A program made the position numbers and the translations under genes. DNA of 63,746 nt, counting the filler, from Reticulomyxa filosa (Eukaryota > Protista > Foraminifera), in NCBI GenBank assembly GCA_000512085.1. It is 16 parts of 16 records of this genome, joined end to end, with 100 filler letters (N's around TTAATTAATTAA, not from the genome) between each part and the next. Parts side by side here need not be neighbours in the genome. Positions count along the whole stretch, not along the records: positions 50,069 to 55,497 come from ASPP01002760.1; 15 more parts are not named here. One strand, 5' to 3'. Under the pieces are notes generated by a model. The model was not told the origin of the DNA and did no database searches. It saw nothing but the letters and a program-made list of their open reading frames with translations. Position 1 is the first letter of the stretch, and each line of letters begins with the position of its first letter. Of this stretch, positions 1 through 55,497 are shown one piece after another.

Positions 1-1194
1 TTTTCATTTTCTGCATTATTTTTAAATTTTTTTAAATATATTTTTGCTTTGACTAAAAAAAAAAAACTTTTTGGTAAGCTTGTGCATTTGATTAATTGTT
101 TTTGATGTTGATTATTTTTTTATATTTTTTTTTTTATTGGCCAATTTTATACTTTTATTCATTGTTGTAGTTATCAATATACTAATCCCTTAATATATTG
201 GACACGTTTTTGTAAGCATTGATATTGCTTTTTTTAATTTAACACCTTTTCGAATACCTAATGCTTTTTTTTTCTCATTTCTTTAAATAAAGTAATATAT
301 ATCATTGCATACACTAAAAATAAAAGATTTCATATAATTTTATTTATTTACCAATATTATGGCTCTCCAATATCGCCGTTCTATTTTTAATTTGTCTAAA
401 CCGTTACGGATTGTCATAGCGATAGAACGGCTGTTTTGGTACTCTTGGTATTTCTTTAGTACTTGAATCAACAATAAAATGAGATTGGTGAAGTTTTCTA
501 TCGATATTATGCTTTGTGCCTTCGCGTTCCTCCGAAATTCCACCATCTTTTATGTCTTTGCAACATAAGGTGATATTGTTGTTATTTTTTTCATTCGTTC
601 ACACAACAAATGCGTCAAGACAGACATTTTTTCAAGCTGGATATTTTATTGATCGGTTGTTTTTTTTTTTGAGCGGCAAGCATTTCAAATATTTGTCGAC
701 AAAACCAAGTCCCAGTCTGTCCATTCAGCATTGTTGTCAATATCTTGACCACATAAAGGGTACTGTTTCATCAACACTAACAATTGCACATGTTCTCCAT
801 CAAAATGCTACAAAAATAAAACTTATATATTCAATATATTATATGGAATATGTAACATAACGACGACAAATGTCCAATTTGTAAGTGGCATCATCTCTCT
901 ACCCACCATGTTGTCATTGCTATTTCTCTTTGCATTTGCACTTATATTCGCACTTGTATTCGTAAGCAAATTCAGAATTGTTATTTCACTCACAGCTTCA
1001 CCCGTATCTATTTTGACAGTATTATTGTCTTCTTCGTTTCTTGACTGCTATTTAATTGATATGTTTTTTTTTTGTTAGTATTATATGGAGTATCNNNNNN
1101 NNNNNNNNNNNNNNNNNNNNNNNNNNNNNNNNNNNNNNTTAATTAATTAANNNNNNNNNNNNNNNNNNNNNNNNNNNNNNNNNNNNNNNNNNNN

Positions 1195-1751
1195 AAATGA
1201 TAATAATAATAAAATGAATAATATTAGTGTAATTGGTGGAAATGGATATACAATTTGCTCTGGATCATATGATAAAACAATTCGAATATGGGATATTGAA
1301 ACAACCAAACAATTGAATATATTCAAAAGACATGAACATTGGATTAGGAGTGTAAAATATGGATCAAATGAATTATTAAATACAATATTATCTGGATCAT
1401 ATGATAAAAGTGTTCGTTTGTGGGATATTCGATCTAGTGAACAAATTCAAGTATTTAATGGACATACAAATACTGTTTATGTTGCTGAATATTCATCATT
1501 TGTAATAAAGAATAATTATTGGTAATTCAAATGTGATATGTTCTGGATCAGAGGATAATACGATTCGTTTTTGGGATATTCGATCAAATAAGAGTGAATT
1601 GTATGTGATAAAAGGAGATAGTGGAATAATGTGCTTGAAGTTTTTACAATTAAAAAAGAATGAAAAGAAGAGAAAATTCAATGATGATATTGGTTGTGGT
1701 ATTAATTTGTGTTATGGTTCATGTAGAGGTTTTATTTATATTTGGGGATAG
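1195..1751 (+). pseudogene. WD40-repeat protein, C-terminal part (5'-truncated by contig edge), frameshifted near 1515
   Basis: Repeats ICSGSYDKTIRIWD, LSGSYDKSVRLWD, FNGHT and ICSGSEDNTIRFWD. One extra base (AATAATTATTGGTAA) relative to the intact KNSIGNSNV of the copies at 49606-49968 and 60111-60484. Confidence 0.85.
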
Positions 1752-2690
1752 TGAAGATGTATTGACTTTGAGTGAATATAAGCCTTTTCAATAAAAATAT
1801 TAAAATGAAAGTGATATAGATGCAACTCCAATTTCAATTGAAAAGTATAATTTTTTTTTTTTTTTTTGATAAAATAAAAAGAAGGAAAAGTATAATGATC
1901 AGTATTTTCATTTGCAAAATTGACTTTGATGACAAAATATATTAAACAAACTATTGAGACAAAAATCATGCAACTGTGATGTGTTTGTTATTCAAACAAA
2001 AAATAATTATCTTTCCAAATGGATAAGAAATATTAGACAAAGAAGGGATGATTTGACAATGAAATACATTAGTGGTCAAAATAAAATCGATATAAATTTC
2101 TTTGAAATCTTTAATAATACTTAATGTGAATATCTTTGTATTTGTTACCAAACCAATCCATTAACAATTTCTAAAAAACATTATTCAATTGTCTTTCATT
2201 CAATTTCTCCAATATTTTAAAAATAAATATATATTTTGTTTATAACATTGTATAACAATACTTAAATTTTCTGTAAAAATACACAAATAATGTAATCAAT
2301 AATATATGAATGGATGGATATCTGGATGATGAAAAATATATTTAAAATTGTGTAAATAAAATTTTATTACTTTATTCAATAACCTAATATCGTATGCATA
2401 ATTATTGTCTTGTCAAATGATAAAATAAATGCAATAATTTCAAACTTAAATCTTGCTTGATATTGGTGTGCATACCAATCTTTTTTTACAAATATTTTTT
2501 TTTAAAAAAAAAAAGGAAAAATAAAATCTTCTTTGCTAGTGAAGGGACAAAAATATTGTTAATTTTAAAAAATAACCTTAAAGCATTGATAAAATTACAT
2601 ATTTCCTTTATGTGAAGGAAGTTATATTTTTTTAATCAAAATGGAAAAAAAGTTATAATGATATTCATGAGAAAAATAAATCAATTATCT

Positions 2691-3887
2691 TCATAATTTG
2701 ATAATAATTTTGTTAAGATCATTGATCCATCCTAATTTTATCTTTAAAATACGAATCCAATATTGAATAATACAATTTATTTCATTTTTTGACTGTATTT
2801 ATTATTTATTATATAATTTATTTGTGTTTTATCAAAATAAATAAATAAATATATCATTACCAACAATGAATGATCCCATATACGTACTTTTGTTTTCATG
2901 TGAGTTGATACTGATGTATCTTTATCACTTCTTCCTCCAATAATGTATATATAATTATCTTCTTCATTCAATATTGCAACACAATAAAATAATGGATTGG
3001 GTAAAGTTTTTTTAAATGTCATCCATTTATTTTCTTGAATTGAATATTTGTGTACTGATTTTGAAAAAATCCATTTTTTATTATTCCAAATCCATCCACC
3101 AAAGAATAAAATTATATCATTTATACACACATATGCATATCTATTGAATGATATAATATTCTTAGAAATAGGTATTTGATGAAATTGAAAAATATTGTTA
3201 TCTTCATCATATTCAATTAATAATCCTGTCTTCAAACAAAATAACATCATTTGACAATTTTGTTTATTTGTTTTCATCATTTCTTGTCTTTGTATATTTT
3301 CTGAAATTGATATAAAGCAATGATAAAATGCTTTAATTGGTAAATTATCATATTTAATAAATTGAAATGTATTTAAATCAAACACACTAATATTATTTTC
3401 AAAATAAGTAATAAATAATAAATTATTGCTAATTCCACTAATTACTGCACGCATTCCTCGATAATCATCATTATTTCTTCCAATGATAATTGGATGATTG
3501 TGATTGTTTATAAAAGGGATCCATTGATTATAATTATTAAATTCATTTGCTTTATTTGATACATCTGATATATTATTATTATTCCAAATACTTACATATT
3601 TCATTATCAATGTATGTCGTGTACGTTTATCCCATCCACCAAAAGATAATAAAGTAATTTGATTATTATTATCTACTAGTTTCAATACACAATGTCCATA
3701 TAATTGAACATGATTTGGATACTCACAAATAAACTTATATTCATTTTTAAGTATATGATAAGAATAACAAGCTCTTTGTTGATAACCTACCTCCACAAAT
3801 GAGAAGTTCGTGTTTATGTAGCACACATTGAGTTTGCTCAAGTGGAGTGGGTAATTCCTTCAAAATTTGAAAGGTTTGATTACCCAT
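2691..3887 (-). pseudogene. Kelch-repeat (beta-propeller) protein with a frameshift near 3790 and one intron (2793-2860)
   Basis: ATG at 3887 reads MGNQTFQILKELPTPLEQTQCVLHKHELLICGG, then shifts frame into the 2777..3841 ORF. Kelch motifs LLSFGG, ILFFGG...W and IYIIGG are present. A GT..AG intron precedes the last exon SKNEINCIIQYWIRILKIKLGWINDLNKIIIKL*. Confidence 0.8.
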
Positions 3888-50068: not shown

Positions 50069-53000
50069 CAATTAAAAAATGTATTATTATTTATTAATTT
50101 GTTGAATTTGTTCTTACGTCGGTTTATGTTCTCGCATTTAGCGCAAATGCAGAAGCTTACACTTCCAGATTTGGAGACCCCTCCAAAATTCAAAGGAGAT
50201 GAAGACACACACAACAGCAGATTACTTCCTTTGCCCTTGCCTCCTCTATTTCAGCACACACACATCAGCCAATTTAATTCGAACCACTCTACCGGAAAAT
50301 CGCAGAATTTTTCAAGACCTTTGCCACCGACCCCTGATTTTTCAAACGTATCGTTGATCGCCGATCAAATAATACAACAACAATACATTTCCAGTCTAGG
50401 GCAACACAGAAACCTGTACACACCAGAAGCGCAAAACAGAAGTAATAATAAAAACCACCCGACCGCATTTTCGCAACCGCAATCGCAGTCTCAACCAGAG
50501 CCGAAACAAAGCGAAAAACATACAGCACTTCCCCCCTTAAAGTCTTACTTTTACAATCCAGATGTGAATTTGCCATCGCAAAATTCTTCCATTCATTCAA
50601 TAGACAAACTGCAAATATTTGCAAGACTTAAATGTCATGACTATCAAAAAGATAGCTCCAAAAACATACACACACACAATAATAGTATTTCTTTTCCTCT
50701 AAAACACACGAATAACAACACTTTCGAATTTTCCAACATCTTTCCATCATCTTCGGATAACAAATATGTTAGTAACACAATCTTGCAACCATACATAGAC
50801 AAAGTTATAAAAGGTCAAAACGCATTAGTAATAGCATATGGACATTCGGACAGCGGTAAAACATTTTCAATCATTGGCAATGAAAACGTAAACAATAGTC
50901 AATGTTATGCCATCTTACCAACAGCATTCAAAATGTTAATTGAGTCACAAATGAAATTAACAACAATACTATTTTCAGCAATAGAAGTTTATGGCATTAA
51001 TGCTGAAAACACAAAACATTTCGACCTACTAATCGACAATCACCAAGGTATGAAAGACTTAAAACCGCAAAAAGCAACTCAACTAGCAATAACCAATATC
51101 ACAGCATTTCAGCCAATAATCGAAAGAATTAGAAAAAACACACATTCTACAGCAATCAGACATAATTATAAGTCATCTAGAGGTCACGTTGTATACACAA
51201 TAAAATTATACCAAAAATTTTCAAGCGTAGTTACAACACCTTTGGTAAGCACATTAACCATTATTGATTGTGCATGGGCAGGCAACATACATTTCAAAAT
51301 AGCAAATGTTATTTCACCATTACCTCGTAACGAAGTGCAACAGTTACGTGAAAAAGAGGATGAAGTCATCCAACAAGGCAACGACCAACTCCGGAAACTT
51401 TTCCAAGATATAGCAGTCAACAGAAGTCCATATGCCACTGAAATTGGGAGACTAAAAGCTTTATTGTTACCTCTATCATCACAATTAACATGGGTCGCCG
51501 TATTAACGACAATTGCGGAAGATATCAACGATGTGAATACAATTGACAAAATGTTGCAATTCATTTCAAATGTAAATTTAAATTATTCAAATTTAAATTC
51601 AAAACAAAATTCAACTACTACAAATGTGCCACAAAAAGTCACAAGCACAACTTTGTCGCAAGAGTTTGCAAATACATGTCCTCATCAGAGCAATGTCTTG
51701 CCACAGCTCTTTAACACGAGAGAACCTTTACGTCCCGCCGTCGACAAAATCCAACCACACAACACACAAAATCTTAGTGTAGACAACAACGATATTACAT
51801 ATATACAAAAGGAGAAAATAAAGAAAGCTTTGATCGAACATATATATGAACAACCAAATACCTCCAACGCTAAAAATACAATCCCAAGTAACCAAAATGC
51901 CGTCAGACAAATCGTTAGCGCAACAGTAAACGACGTTACCATTGAAACAAGAGATAACAAACAGGTGAATAATTCCACAACAAATCATGTGCATACATCC
52001 AACCATCATCTCCTGCATCCTGTCATTAACACTGAAATCGCAAAATCTCAAAGAAACACTGAATCACCAACCACCGACGAAAACATTGCCAAATCTTCCA
52101 ATAAAGAGGATGAAGAAAAATATCCAACCGCGTCCGATAGCGAAATTGTCTCCGAGCAAGAGAGTGAAATAGATCCAAAAAATTATACCGATTTAGATGA
52201 CGAGTACATGCAATTCAAAGACCATTTGAATATCAATCAAGTCTGCCCAATCTCAGATTGCGGATATACTACAAATTCCGAAAAATTGCGCGTCCTGATT
52301 GCACATATTAACAAACACACAACGGGTCGATTAGCAGGAAACATTCCAGAAAGTTTCCTGGAGAAACACAACAGAATAGTCTGTTCACATTGCAAGAAAA
52401 CTCTGGCAAAAGGCAGAGCAATCAATAATATGCATACCAGATGTTCAGTCTCTAAATCGCAATCGCATCCAAATGGGCAAGTCGAAATTGTACCTGTGCA
52501 AATACAACATCATTTCCTTTGGTCGGACATTACACCGGTCTTCGTCGCAAAAAAGCCTGCCAAACTCATCGCCAGAGTGCCCAAAGAGGCAAGGCTACTT
52601 TTCGCCGCTGGCGTCTCATCGTGCCTTCAAAACATTATCGAAAACAACAATATTCAAGCATGGACAGCATGGATGGTATACATACGTTCAATGCTTTGGC
52701 AACCTGAGAGAGAAGGGAAACAACATATCAGAACGCTCACAAATACAATCGTCAATCGAATCCAAAGATGGAGAGCAGGAGAAAAACAACAACTGTGGTT
52801 TGAGTTCCTCGCACACTCCCAAAAAATCAAAGAAAAACCAAGACGTGACAACCCACCAAAACGGTCAGAAGATTCAATACGATCATCTTGCATGAAATAT
52901 GCCGCTCTCGGAGAATACTCCAAGGCCTTCCAATCGATGAAGCCAACGCAAGCGACATTGTACAATGACAACACAATAGCTGCGTTGCAGGCCAAGCATC

Positions 53001-55497
53001 CATACGAAGACAGCCCACAAATTCCAATCCAAAACAGACGAGCATCCAATTCGAGATCAAAAGTACAATCCATAACAGTTGACGAACTTAGAGAATATAT
53101 CCAAAAGTTGCATCGTTCATCATCTGGTGGAATTGACCTCTTTGCAGCTCAATTTCTACACGACATTGAACCATTCGACCTCGAGACATACGCGATTACA
53201 AATTGGGCCAGGGTGGCGCACATGATTGCAAGTGGAAATGTGTGTGAGGAGGCCAGAGCCATCACGTATGGGGCCAGGCTAATTGCGGTGTCCAAACCAG
53301 ATGGCTCGCCCAGACCAATAGCAATCGGTTCACTCTTTCGTCGATCCGCTTCAGCCATTCTCGTCAAAAGACACGCAGAAGATTTAAAGAATCTTGTGGG
53401 CCACAAACAATTTGGCATTAACACCATCAAAGGCATCGAACTATTTTCACATAGTTTCAAAGCCATCCTTCGACGTACGCAGTTAACCACCGGAGCAGTC
53501 GCTGTCAAGATAGATTTTCGCAACGCCTTCAATACTGTCCGTCGTCAAAAGCTCATTGACCTAGTCAACGAAAAAATCCCCCAATTATGGCAATCACTCA
53601 CCTCTCATCTTACCAAACGAATCAATCATACATTCTTGCACAGGAGTACATCAGGGGGACCAACTGGGAAGTGCACTCTTTGCAATCGTCTTGGCTGATG
53701 CCTTGGAACTGGCCCTCAAAGAGATCCGCAACATATATCACGCAGCCTATCATGATGATTTGGTCATCGCTGCCAACGACTCCGCAACAGCAGTACAAGC
53801 AATCGAAAATTTAATACATTTACGACAGTCCCATGGTATCGAAATAAATATCAACAAATGCGAATGGCTTGCAGAAGAGACAAACACTCCACCCACTCAA
53901 TTGGCCGGAATAAAACATGTTACTGACTTCAATACCACTCTGGTCAGCAAGCAATGGAAAAACACATGGACAGTTGGGATGGAGATTTTGACAATATCAA
54001 AAATGTAAATCATGCACAAACAATGCTTTTACTCTTACGTCACACGATGCAAATCTCCAAGACAAATTATTTCCTCCGGGCAAATTTTACTGACCCACGA
54101 GATAATTGGGCCAAAAGATTTGATGCAAGATTAAAAGGGGTCATGGAAGTTATCATTAACAAGCCCCTCACAGAAATACAATGGTTGCAATGTCAGCTGC
54201 CAATCAGAGCTGGTGGTCTCGGCCTGCGCACGATCAAACAATTTTCCAGCGCCGCCTTTATCGCCTAATCTGTGAACGCAAGTCTCACGTTGCCTACCAT
54301 TTACAGTCATATCAGCAATGGTTGGATATGTCAAGTCGAGATCAACAATGCAATTTTCCATTTCAATCAAAGTGTTCCCCCACAGCAAAGTTTCAACGAT
54401 TGGTCCATACCGGTCCAGCAGTCCACATTATCCGAACGTATAATCAATCAAGCAATCAACACGTTAAAGCAAAAATCATCAGACAGAGCAAATAAATTGT
54501 TAACTTCGTTATCAATCAATCAAGCATCCTCATATTTGCACGCCGTCCCCAACAGATTCCTGCACAGTTTTTTCGAAAACCCCGAATTCCACCCCATTCT
54601 TCAATTCCGCCTAGGAATGGAAATTGCCACAAGCACAATTTGCCACGGAGGGGCCGAATGTCCAGCCATAATGGATCCCCACGGAGACCACGCTTTACAT
54701 TGCAGATATGGCAAAGTTCGCATATCCAGACACAACAAAATAGTATCATGCATCTCCAATTTCCTCAGAAGAGCAGGCATATCGCACCAAGTCGAACCCC
54801 GCATAGCTGCCGAACACAGAAGAAGACCAGCCGATTTGGCAATGAAATGGTTTGAACACGAACATGATATAACATTCTTCGATGTCGGCGTGACCCATAT
54901 AATGATTGAAGAACAGCGACCAGCCCGTCTCCAGGCGGCGCAAAACTATTTCGATACCAAAAATAGAAAGCACAAGCAAGCAAGTCATCGTTGCGGTGCA
55001 GAGTATATTCCATTGATTACCGAGACCACTGGTGGCTGGCATCAAGAGGCCAAAAACTTTTTCCATACTCTCTGCCAATCATTAGCAAATAAAGAAAGAA
55101 CTTCAATTGACAAAGCCAAGCAAACGATATATCGGTCACTAAGTGTCGCCCTCCAAAAAGGTAACGCATTAGCACTAATCACGCATTGCAAATGAACGAA
55201 TCCGATTATGTTATCATAGAGCGACCAGAAAAAATCAATTACCAAAGAATTAGTAGACATAACAAGTACATGGAGAAGGCACAAAATAATAACACTTAAC
55301 TTAAACACCATTAATTTTTGAATGGTATGAGAAAACATTGAAATGCAAGTGTTGACAAACAGCACTAATGCAAAATGTAAAGAGTTATTTTTCATTGAGG
55401 GAAGGGATTAAAGCAAAACAAAATTTTCGTTTATCTTATTTAAGTTCACTTTAAGCACGGCATCACTCGCCAAGTTGCTGGACTTAAAAAAAAAAAA
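50069..55497 (+). mobile_element. CRE-like non-LTR retrotransposon (RLE class) carrying an N-terminal kinesin motor domain; this copy has two frameshifts and one nonsense codon
   Basis: The ORF from ATG 50126 gives kinesin motor (about 50609-51580), two zinc fingers (about 52244-52445), then RT (ARLIAVSKPDGSPRPIAIG, QFGI, IDFRNAFN, GVHQGDQLG, YHDD at 53748-53759). Downstream: QLPIRAGGLG, CCHC plus RH (54641-54733), RRPAD...FDV...K...PLITETTGGW endonuclease, stop at 55195, about 290 nt of 3' UTR and a 12-nt A-run at 55486-55497. Confidence 0.93.
50609..51580 (+). other. Kinesin motor domain (divergent) within the retrotransposon ORF
   Basis: Ordered motifs: LQIFARLK (VxVRxR), FEFSNIF (FxFDxVF), VIKGQNALVIAYGHSDSGKTFSIIG (P-loop), ILP, FSAIEVY, DLL, NYKSSRGHVVYTIKL (switch I), LTIIDCAWAG (switch II), REKE..I, SPY...RLKALL and IDKMLQF. 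Confidence 0.9.

Follow-up and report, generated by a model that had tools for sequence, protein, structure and literature searches.

Can a kinesin motor domain be a genuine part of a retrotransposon? This question is raised by a locus of the freshwater foraminiferan Reticulomyxa filosa within the window, i.e. the whole 63,746-nucleotide stretch of DNA analysed here. Positions 50069-55497 of the window, which are the whole of contig ASPP01002760.1 (5429 bases), hold a copy of a non-LTR retrotransposon (long interspersed nuclear element, LINE) in which a kinesin-like sequence and a reverse transcriptase (RT) share one reading frame; we refer to it as the window copy. We propose, with a probability of roughly 0.8, that it belongs to a family whose protein contains a kinesin-derived domain that was captured once, was kept while its flanks drifted and serves a LINE of the restriction-like-endonuclease (RLE) type. 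In this protein, the kinesin-derived domain stands between a short, variable N-terminus and an unconserved, disordered linker; two zinc fingers and the RT come next, and a CCHC knuckle with a PD-(D/E)xK endonuclease makes up the C-terminus.

The window copy has a frame on the plus strand, as do all its features given below, that is open from 50099 (TTG) to a TGA at 53696-53698 and comprises 1199 codons, with the first ATG at 50126; the longest open reading frame (ORF) across 200 shuffles of 50069-55497 had 185 codons. The first-pass annotation had described a stop-free, intronless frame starting at this ATG and running from a kinesin through zinc fingers into RT, which is what we found. Likewise, its observation that the RT reading departs from the long frame near 53585 agrees with a frameshifting indel at 53585-53600, behind which the RT motifs GVHQGD and YHDD are read in a different frame. 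The remainder of the RT, the CCHC knuckle, the endonuclease and a 3' A-run, which it had placed downstream, were also located there, with the motifs between 53643 and 54976 and a run of 12 A's at 55486-55497.

Profile searches bore out both halves of the fusion. Pfam Kinesin (PF00225, curated cut-off 29.3 bits) matched residues 190-392 with 86.3 bits (E 2.4e-24), covering profile positions 24-233 of 327 and thus just the first two thirds of the motor, and Microtub_bd was also found in the long frame. RVT_1 matched in two pieces, at residues 1065-1168 (E 1.7e-7) and, in the next frame, at 53691-54005 (E 1.1e-6). The kinesin-derived domain as a whole (50600-51631) is supported by Pfam, by its match to KIF4 in the PDB and by structure prediction. 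The AlphaFold2 model of residues 168-511 reached a mean pLDDT of 87.3 and a pTM of 0.89, with the caveat that it was built from a 69-row alignment of kinesins, and Foldseek matched it to the motors of Eg5, kinesin-1, KIF4 and others (E ~1e-20, TM 0.70-0.76, ~340 columns). A complete kinesin motor fold is therefore predicted for the window copy. By sequence, the best match among solved structures is KIF4 (kinesin-4; E 6e-13), and the NCBI product of the locus, P0001, is named 'kinesin family member 4, partial' (100% identity). A motif scan located the P-loop GHSDSGKT (AYGHSDSGKT, 50834-50863), switch I SSRGH (NYKSSRGH, 51164-51187), a degenerate switch II DCAWAG (IIDCAWAG, 51260-51283) and an alpha6-like MLQFISNVN (51551-51577). 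Of the full set of kinesin motor motifs claimed by the first-pass annotation, all quoted motifs are thus in place and the whole fold is predicted, but switch II reads DCAWAG and not DLAGSE.

Is the kinesin a property of this one copy or of an element family? Evidence on the family comes from four or five loci of a strongly fragmented assembly (N50 3.6 kb; PMC13746701), namely the window copy, L001 (ASPP01029371, NCBI model P0003), L002 (protein P0002), L003 (ASPP01026273, P0011) and the fragment L004 (a 703-base contig, P0015). In L001, an uninterrupted frame, which we call ORF2, runs from an ATG at 3641 to the contig end at 7665, and its straight translation matches Pfam Kinesin with 34.4 bits over profile positions 26-327 of 327 as well as RVT_1 (E 9e-18). 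BLASTP of the product of the window copy against L001 gave two colinear matches, one in the RT (40% identity, E 2e-93) and one in the kinesin (23%, E 1e-8). In L003, the frame from an ATG at 227 to the contig end leads through a well-preserved kinesin domain and, behind a linker of 102 residues, through the two zinc fingers and the pre-RT motif, with one in-frame stop; the AT-rich leader before this ATG has stops in all frames. L004 is a broken fragment of 142 residues with 51% identity to the motor of the window copy. L002 has an intact zinc finger-RT-CCHC-RLE frame, the 5' end of which is cut by the contig edge.

The order kinesin-linker-zinc finger(-RT) in one frame therefore recurs in three mutually divergent contigs, the window copy, L001 and L003, with identities among the fusion copies of 22-29% in the kinesin, 28-46% in the zinc fingers and ~40-45% in the RT (window copy against L001). 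PF00225 passes its curated threshold in all three (for the L003 product as a precomputed match). These comparisons establish, at the level of sequence, that the kinesin belongs to the element family: no fewer than three lineages, whose RT or zinc fingers now share ~40% identity, have it in the corresponding place and frame. The in-frame kinesin-RT fusion proposed for one locus is thus a family property.

The L001 contig contains a further ORF upstream (333-3644; 1103 codons, S/T/P-rich, no Pfam match), which overlaps the start of the kinesin ORF by an ATGA, an arrangement as in two-ORF retroelements. We consider it a candidate ORF1; it showed no similarity to the N-termini of the window copy, L002 or L003, or to the linkers.

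The class of the element could be confirmed as non-LTR (LINE) of the RLE type. In comparison with solved proteins, the family zinc finger-RT-RLE profile matched R2 (E 3e-20 to 1e-17) and LINE-1 ORF2p (1e-13), with group II intron and retron RTs well behind; a single-sequence RT search of the PDB gave no match, where the profile search succeeded. In the C-terminal module, a Cys/His knuckle (C..C..H..C) and then E, RPxD, DVxV and K are invariant across the window copy, P0002 and P0005. No Pfam model matched the endonuclease or the knuckle, which were recognised by motif and alignment only. Both Cys/His zinc fingers are kept in the window copy, L001, L002 and L003; a weak Pfam zf-BED match (E 0.004) was obtained in the window copy. 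As to the 3' end, the A-run lies at the very end of the contig of the window copy without a flank, and at the 3' end of L002 no tail is seen within 148 bases. RLE-type non-LTR elements comprise the clades R2, CRE, NeSL/Utopia, R4 and HERO, and the CRE clade, which the first-pass annotation had recognised in the layout, consists of CRE1/2, SLACS and CZAR, elements that target spliced-leader RNA genes. The domain order does not single out this clade, because it is common to all RLE clades; the zinc finger-RT-CCHC-RLE order is found, for example, in Utopia/NeSL (PMC4640811). The nearest RTs outside R. filosa (P0004, P0005 and L006) are 24-36% identical and show no kinesin.

We compared the copies segment by segment with Smith-Waterman alignments within the same open frames and scored them against shuffles. 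The linker served as an internal control, because every segment must stay open for translation of the RT. In the N-terminus (41-172 residues) and in the linker (102-383 residues, at least 819 in L002), no identity was detectable and z was ~0 (at most 2.7 in the linker). The kinesin segment, with 321-338 residues, reached z 21-49 at a local identity of 22-29%, the zinc fingers (65-67 residues) z 13-35 at 28-46%, and the RT of the window copy, L001 and L002, which is partial in most copies, z >160 at 45-54%. Openness of the frame alone does not explain the retained similarity of the kinesin. Between the window copy and L004 (137 codons), dN was ~0.37-0.39 and dS ~1.5-2.7, which gives a ratio of ~0.15-0.25 with dS saturated. 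Neither a 2A-like peptide nor a basic nuclear-localisation stretch was found between kinesin and RT, and because there is no 2A-like release peptide between the two, a fusion protein is expected.

Where does the kinesin come from? An exhaustive search of 1.84 billion representatives returned nothing above 25-33% identity except the product of the window copy itself and the L004 fragment P0015 (46%). In a kinesin tree of 78 rows, the three element kinesins group with RFI_34852 of R. filosa, transcripts of Bolivina argentea and short contigs from JGI/IMG and Logan. The element copies share features of this group, among them LSA(I/V)E.(Y/F)G, an insertion that follows DLL and, behind switch II, a long loop; along the entire L003 motor, identity to proteins of the group is 31-37%. 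As far as sequence relationships can demonstrate it, the element kinesin derives from this foraminifer-type group. The end branches of the element kinesins are very long, at 1.6-3.4 substitutions per site where the median is 0.51. The unconstrained tree does not resolve the element kinesins; a tree in which they had to form one clade exceeded the free search by 42.5 log-likelihood units (approximately unbiased test, p 0.947), and a single capture of the kinesin is not rejected. The linkers and N-termini of the element copies showed no similarity to any kinesin tail.

The fusion frames are intronless in the copies seen, and the kinesin may have been captured from a spliced mRNA, as the first-pass annotation proposed; no intron-bearing host gene was found for comparison, and the nearest comparator is itself intronless and broken. 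This comparator is the nearest kinesin locus of R. filosa, RFI_34852 (L005:556-1950), with near-canonical motifs (GQTVSGKT, FSRGH, DCSGSE), an intronless motor, a Cys/His-rich N-terminus, two in-frame stops and no RT behind it on its contig of 4.2 kb. Possibly a retrocopy or a pseudogene, it was rejected as an intron-bearing host comparator. In Bolivina argentea, a transcript of 566 amino acids (P0018) contains a complete kinesin-like domain of the same group, behind which a second one begins in tandem; no RT was found within the available part. The top ranks of the exhaustive search were taken by proteins of the beetle Acanthoscelides obtectus (P0006, P0009 and P0016) and the mussel Potamilus streckersoni (P0007), which carry internal repeats of kinesin segments (3 to 16 matched stretches) and rank high for this reason. 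They fall outside the foraminifer-type group in the tree and were rejected as relatives; the repeats are probably tandem duplications or annotation artefacts unrelated to the element.

The catalytic motifs differ among the three fusion copies. The window copy, with GHSDSGKT and SSRGH, and L003, with GQTGTGKS and SSRGH, contain both a P-loop of the form GxxxxGK[ST] and a switch I of the form SSRxH, whereas L001 has neither (GQLLAPGL and PPSGH). Switch II reads DCAWAG in the window copy, DLASSEG in L003 and NLVGET in L001; in related host-type kinesins it is DCAGSE or DCSGSE. Decay of dead copies may account for some of these changes.

Could the fusion nevertheless be explained without a role for the kinesin? 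An artefact, through a chimeric assembly or through a LINE that happened once to insert behind a kinesin exon, might be suspected from the fragmentation of the assembly, and the only sequencing runs with matching sequence offer no help: they belong to a synthetic metagenome filed twice (runs X1 and X2), in which pieces of 177-261 bases at 52114-52304, 52705-52965 and 54083-54259 are 100% identical to the window copy, and these were evidently simulated from the published assembly and are not independent support. We exclude a chimera or a one-off insertion because three contigs, diverged to 22-29% in the kinesin and 28-46% in the zinc fingers, share the order in one frame, which leaves an artefact with hardly any credibility. 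Together with the Pfam and Foldseek matches, L001 and L003 thus dispose of the scenarios under which the first-pass annotation would have fallen, namely a missing profile or fold match, a chimeric assembly and a chance insertion. A dead passenger, i.e. a kinesin that was captured once, has no role and stays open only for translation of the downstream RT, has more to be said for it: the catalytic motifs are degenerate in every copy, the kinesins of different copies are only 22-29% identical against ~45% for the RT, and L002 may lack the domain. However, the linker and the N-terminus are under the same open-frame pressure, and there similarity is gone and the linker varies in length from 102 to 383 residues, while the kinesin keeps its length, its fold-defining residues and its alignment scores, remains above the Pfam cut-off in three of three copies and shows a dN well below dS between the window copy and L004. 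We therefore consider a dead passenger unlikely.

Alternatively, the kinesin could be the target and not the cargo, if a site-specific LINE had inserted in frame into the tails of multi-copy host kinesin genes. Indeed, most RLE-type LINEs insert at specific targets (PMC4640811), kinesin genes are numerous in R. filosa (PMC13746701), and in L003 the kinesin opens the frame behind an AT-rich leader, like host kinesins of the same group, in which the motor lies at residues 1-350. However, insertion would have had to happen independently three times, always in frame and without a stop. The very long kinesin branches, combined with two of three frames that are open and one stop in L003, point to a long evolution inside the element ORF, and the linkers and N-termini do not resemble host kinesin tails. 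Moreover, the ATGA overlap with the upstream ORF in L001 makes the kinesin ORF internal to a two-ORF unit, and the one-clade tree of the element kinesins scores better. In our view, insertion into host kinesin genes is quite improbable, and we favour a captured domain that was retained by the element.

Several observations weigh against such a retained and useful domain. The kinesin evolves much faster than the RT, and the monophyly of the element kinesins may come in part from long-branch attraction. None of the three fusion copies has the canonical switch II DxxGxE (DLAGSE), and in L001 the P-loop and most of switch I are gone. In L002, a kinesin profile at maximum sensitivity found no kinesin in the 819 residues upstream of the zinc fingers; this lineage would either have lost the domain or have a longer linker that puts it past the contig edge. 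Among the copies seen, none is fully intact, and present-day activity of the family is for this reason unproven. Finally, the fusion is known from assembled contigs of one species alone. A metagenome scan with the zinc finger-RT profile found one RT relative (36% identity, 5' end cut) and no copy outside R. filosa; word-indexed searches returned only P0015 and one unrelated kinesin for the kinesin-domain profile and only P0011 for the zinc finger/pre-RT profile, and a search of the ESM Atlas with the whole ORF gave no usable match.

What could a kinesin-derived domain do for a retrotransposon? We suggest that, after one capture in an ancestor of these lineages, probably from mRNA, the domain would attach the newly made protein-RNA particle to microtubules, and that the particle would thereby stay on the cell's very large microtubule network, or travel along it, in the direction of nuclei or spindles. 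The first-pass annotation had suggested a motor that could let the particle bind or ride microtubules; an active motor is not established. Changes of the switch II glycine are known from established kinesin biochemistry to yield heads that bind microtubules tightly without cycling. With a non-canonical switch II in each of the three copies and one lineage devoid of the P-loop, the conserved property is more likely to be a rigor-like microtubule binding or tethering than processive, ATP-driven walking, and binding or tethering is the more defensible proposal; a lineage with an active motor may still exist. That intact members would join a working or microtubule-binding kinesin head to the RT and endonuclease, and that in this giant, multinucleate cell the particle would thereby reach nuclei or spindles without host adaptors, is a tentative suggestion that we regard as possible but doubtful.

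Beyond the kinesin, the anatomy of the window copy can be followed from one contig edge to the other. The AT-rich leader (50069-50125) begins at the 5' contig edge, to which the frame stays open. It contains an 11-mer, TAATTTGTTGA, that is also present in the non-coding leader of L003 (L003:60-226) at a similar distance to the start codon; the shared 11-mer may be a conserved 5' untranslated element or chance in AT-rich DNA. The N-terminal stretch (50126-50614) is of low complexity, P/Q/S-rich and not conserved across copies (Smith-Waterman z ~0 against L001 and L003). Behind the motor, a linker of ~222 residues (51578-52243), again of low complexity and unconserved in the segment comparison, leads to zinc finger 1 (C-x4-C...H-x3-H, 52244-52318) and zinc finger 2 (C-x2-C...H-x2-C, 52382-52444), both located by motif scan. 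Positions 52445-53590 hold a conserved pre-RT region, in which PAKLIARVPKEAR lies at 52556, as well as the RT's N-terminal half, the RT motifs being RPIAIG (53312-53329), QFG (53408-53416) and KIDFRNAFN (53507).

At the first frameshifting indel (53585-53600), the window copy has ~6 residues fewer than L001 and L002, and two frames overlap on the same bases, the last ~35 codons of the stop-free frame (50099-53698) lying outside the true RT frame. The C-terminal half of the RT follows in the next frame (53600-53950; GVHQGD at 53643, YHDD at 53748; Pfam RVT_1), and a second frameshifting indel (53940-53960; ~7 residues fewer than in L002) restores the original frame. Next come the post-RT 'thumb' or linker region (53954-54265), with GGLG at 54212-54223, and an in-frame TAA nonsense codon (54266-54268). 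The C-terminal module (54272-55195, ending with a TGA at 55193-55195) shares 41% identity with the C-terminal end of P0002 and retains every invariant residue; by motif and alignment it includes the CCHC knuckle (54641-54703) and the PD-(D/E)xK endonuclease, with RPAD at 54824, FDVGV at 54878 and the K at ~54956-54976. The 3' untranslated region (55196-55497) ends in the A-run at the contig edge.

With two frameshifts and one stop in its RT/endonuclease half, the window copy is slightly decayed and would no longer encode the full protein. All three disabling lesions lie within the 3' 1.6 kb (53585-54268), and the 5' 3.5 kb (50099-53584) are open. By position alone, such clustering would arise with a chance of ~0.03, which does not suffice as an argument that the 5' part is under selection of its own. 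The NCBI models bridge lesions or in-frame sequence with predicted introns, at 53456-53644 in the window copy, ~3990-4075 in L001 and ~1000-1290 in L003. The 84-base 'intron' of the L001 model is in frame and stop-free and holds the decayed P-loop. The deposited P0001, P0003 and P0011 thus differ from the straight translations, and both the continuity and the decay of the frames are understated.

The literature that we searched describes neither a kinesin domain for any non-LTR element nor retrotransposons of R. filosa, and text searches found no cytoskeletal motor domain in any described RLE clade; the R. filosa genome paper lay outside this search and may carry a remark of this kind. As far as this literature goes, we could not find an earlier description of an RLE-type LINE with a kinesin-derived accessory domain. 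At least two database 'kinesins' of R. filosa, P0001, named 'kinesin family member 4', and P0011, which carries Pfam Kinesin, are transposon products, and the kinesin count of the genome is slightly inflated, as the first-pass annotation had anticipated. Viruses and retroelements borrow host motors via adaptors. A motor-derived domain within the element's own replication protein would be a different solution for nuclear access in a very large, microtubule-dominated cell and, if true, a mobile element would encode its own cytoskeletal transport module. The short list of accessory domains known to have been captured by LINEs, with protease, RNase H and esterase among them, would be extended by a cytoskeletal one.

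How does the element compare with known systems? With the kinesin superfamily, it shares a motor fold that is predicted to be whole, and a P-loop and switch I that are kept in the window copy and L003; in contrast to kinesins, no neck or coiled-coil tail follows, but a retrotransposon polyprotein. It thereby offers a natural case of a kinesin head under new constraints, in which the fold is kept and switch II is lost. With the RLE clades, it shares one large ORF in which zinc fingers stand N-terminal to an RT and in which a Cys/His knuckle and a PD-(D/E)xK endonuclease form the C-terminal part, and the presence of several diverged, partly decayed copies; it differs from them by its cytoskeletal motor domain, and its contigs end inside or at the element. 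The closest precedent is found in NeSL/Utopia elements, in which host-derived extra domains, a Ulp1-like cysteine protease at the N-terminus or, in oomycete Utopia, an RNase H, share the ORF with the zinc finger-RT core and lie upstream or downstream of it (PMC4640811). Neither a protease nor an RNase H was found in the R. filosa element by Pfam scans of the window copy and L001; here, the accessory domain instead derives from a kinesin motor and spans ~330 residues, and a long, unconserved stretch of linker lies between it and the zinc fingers.

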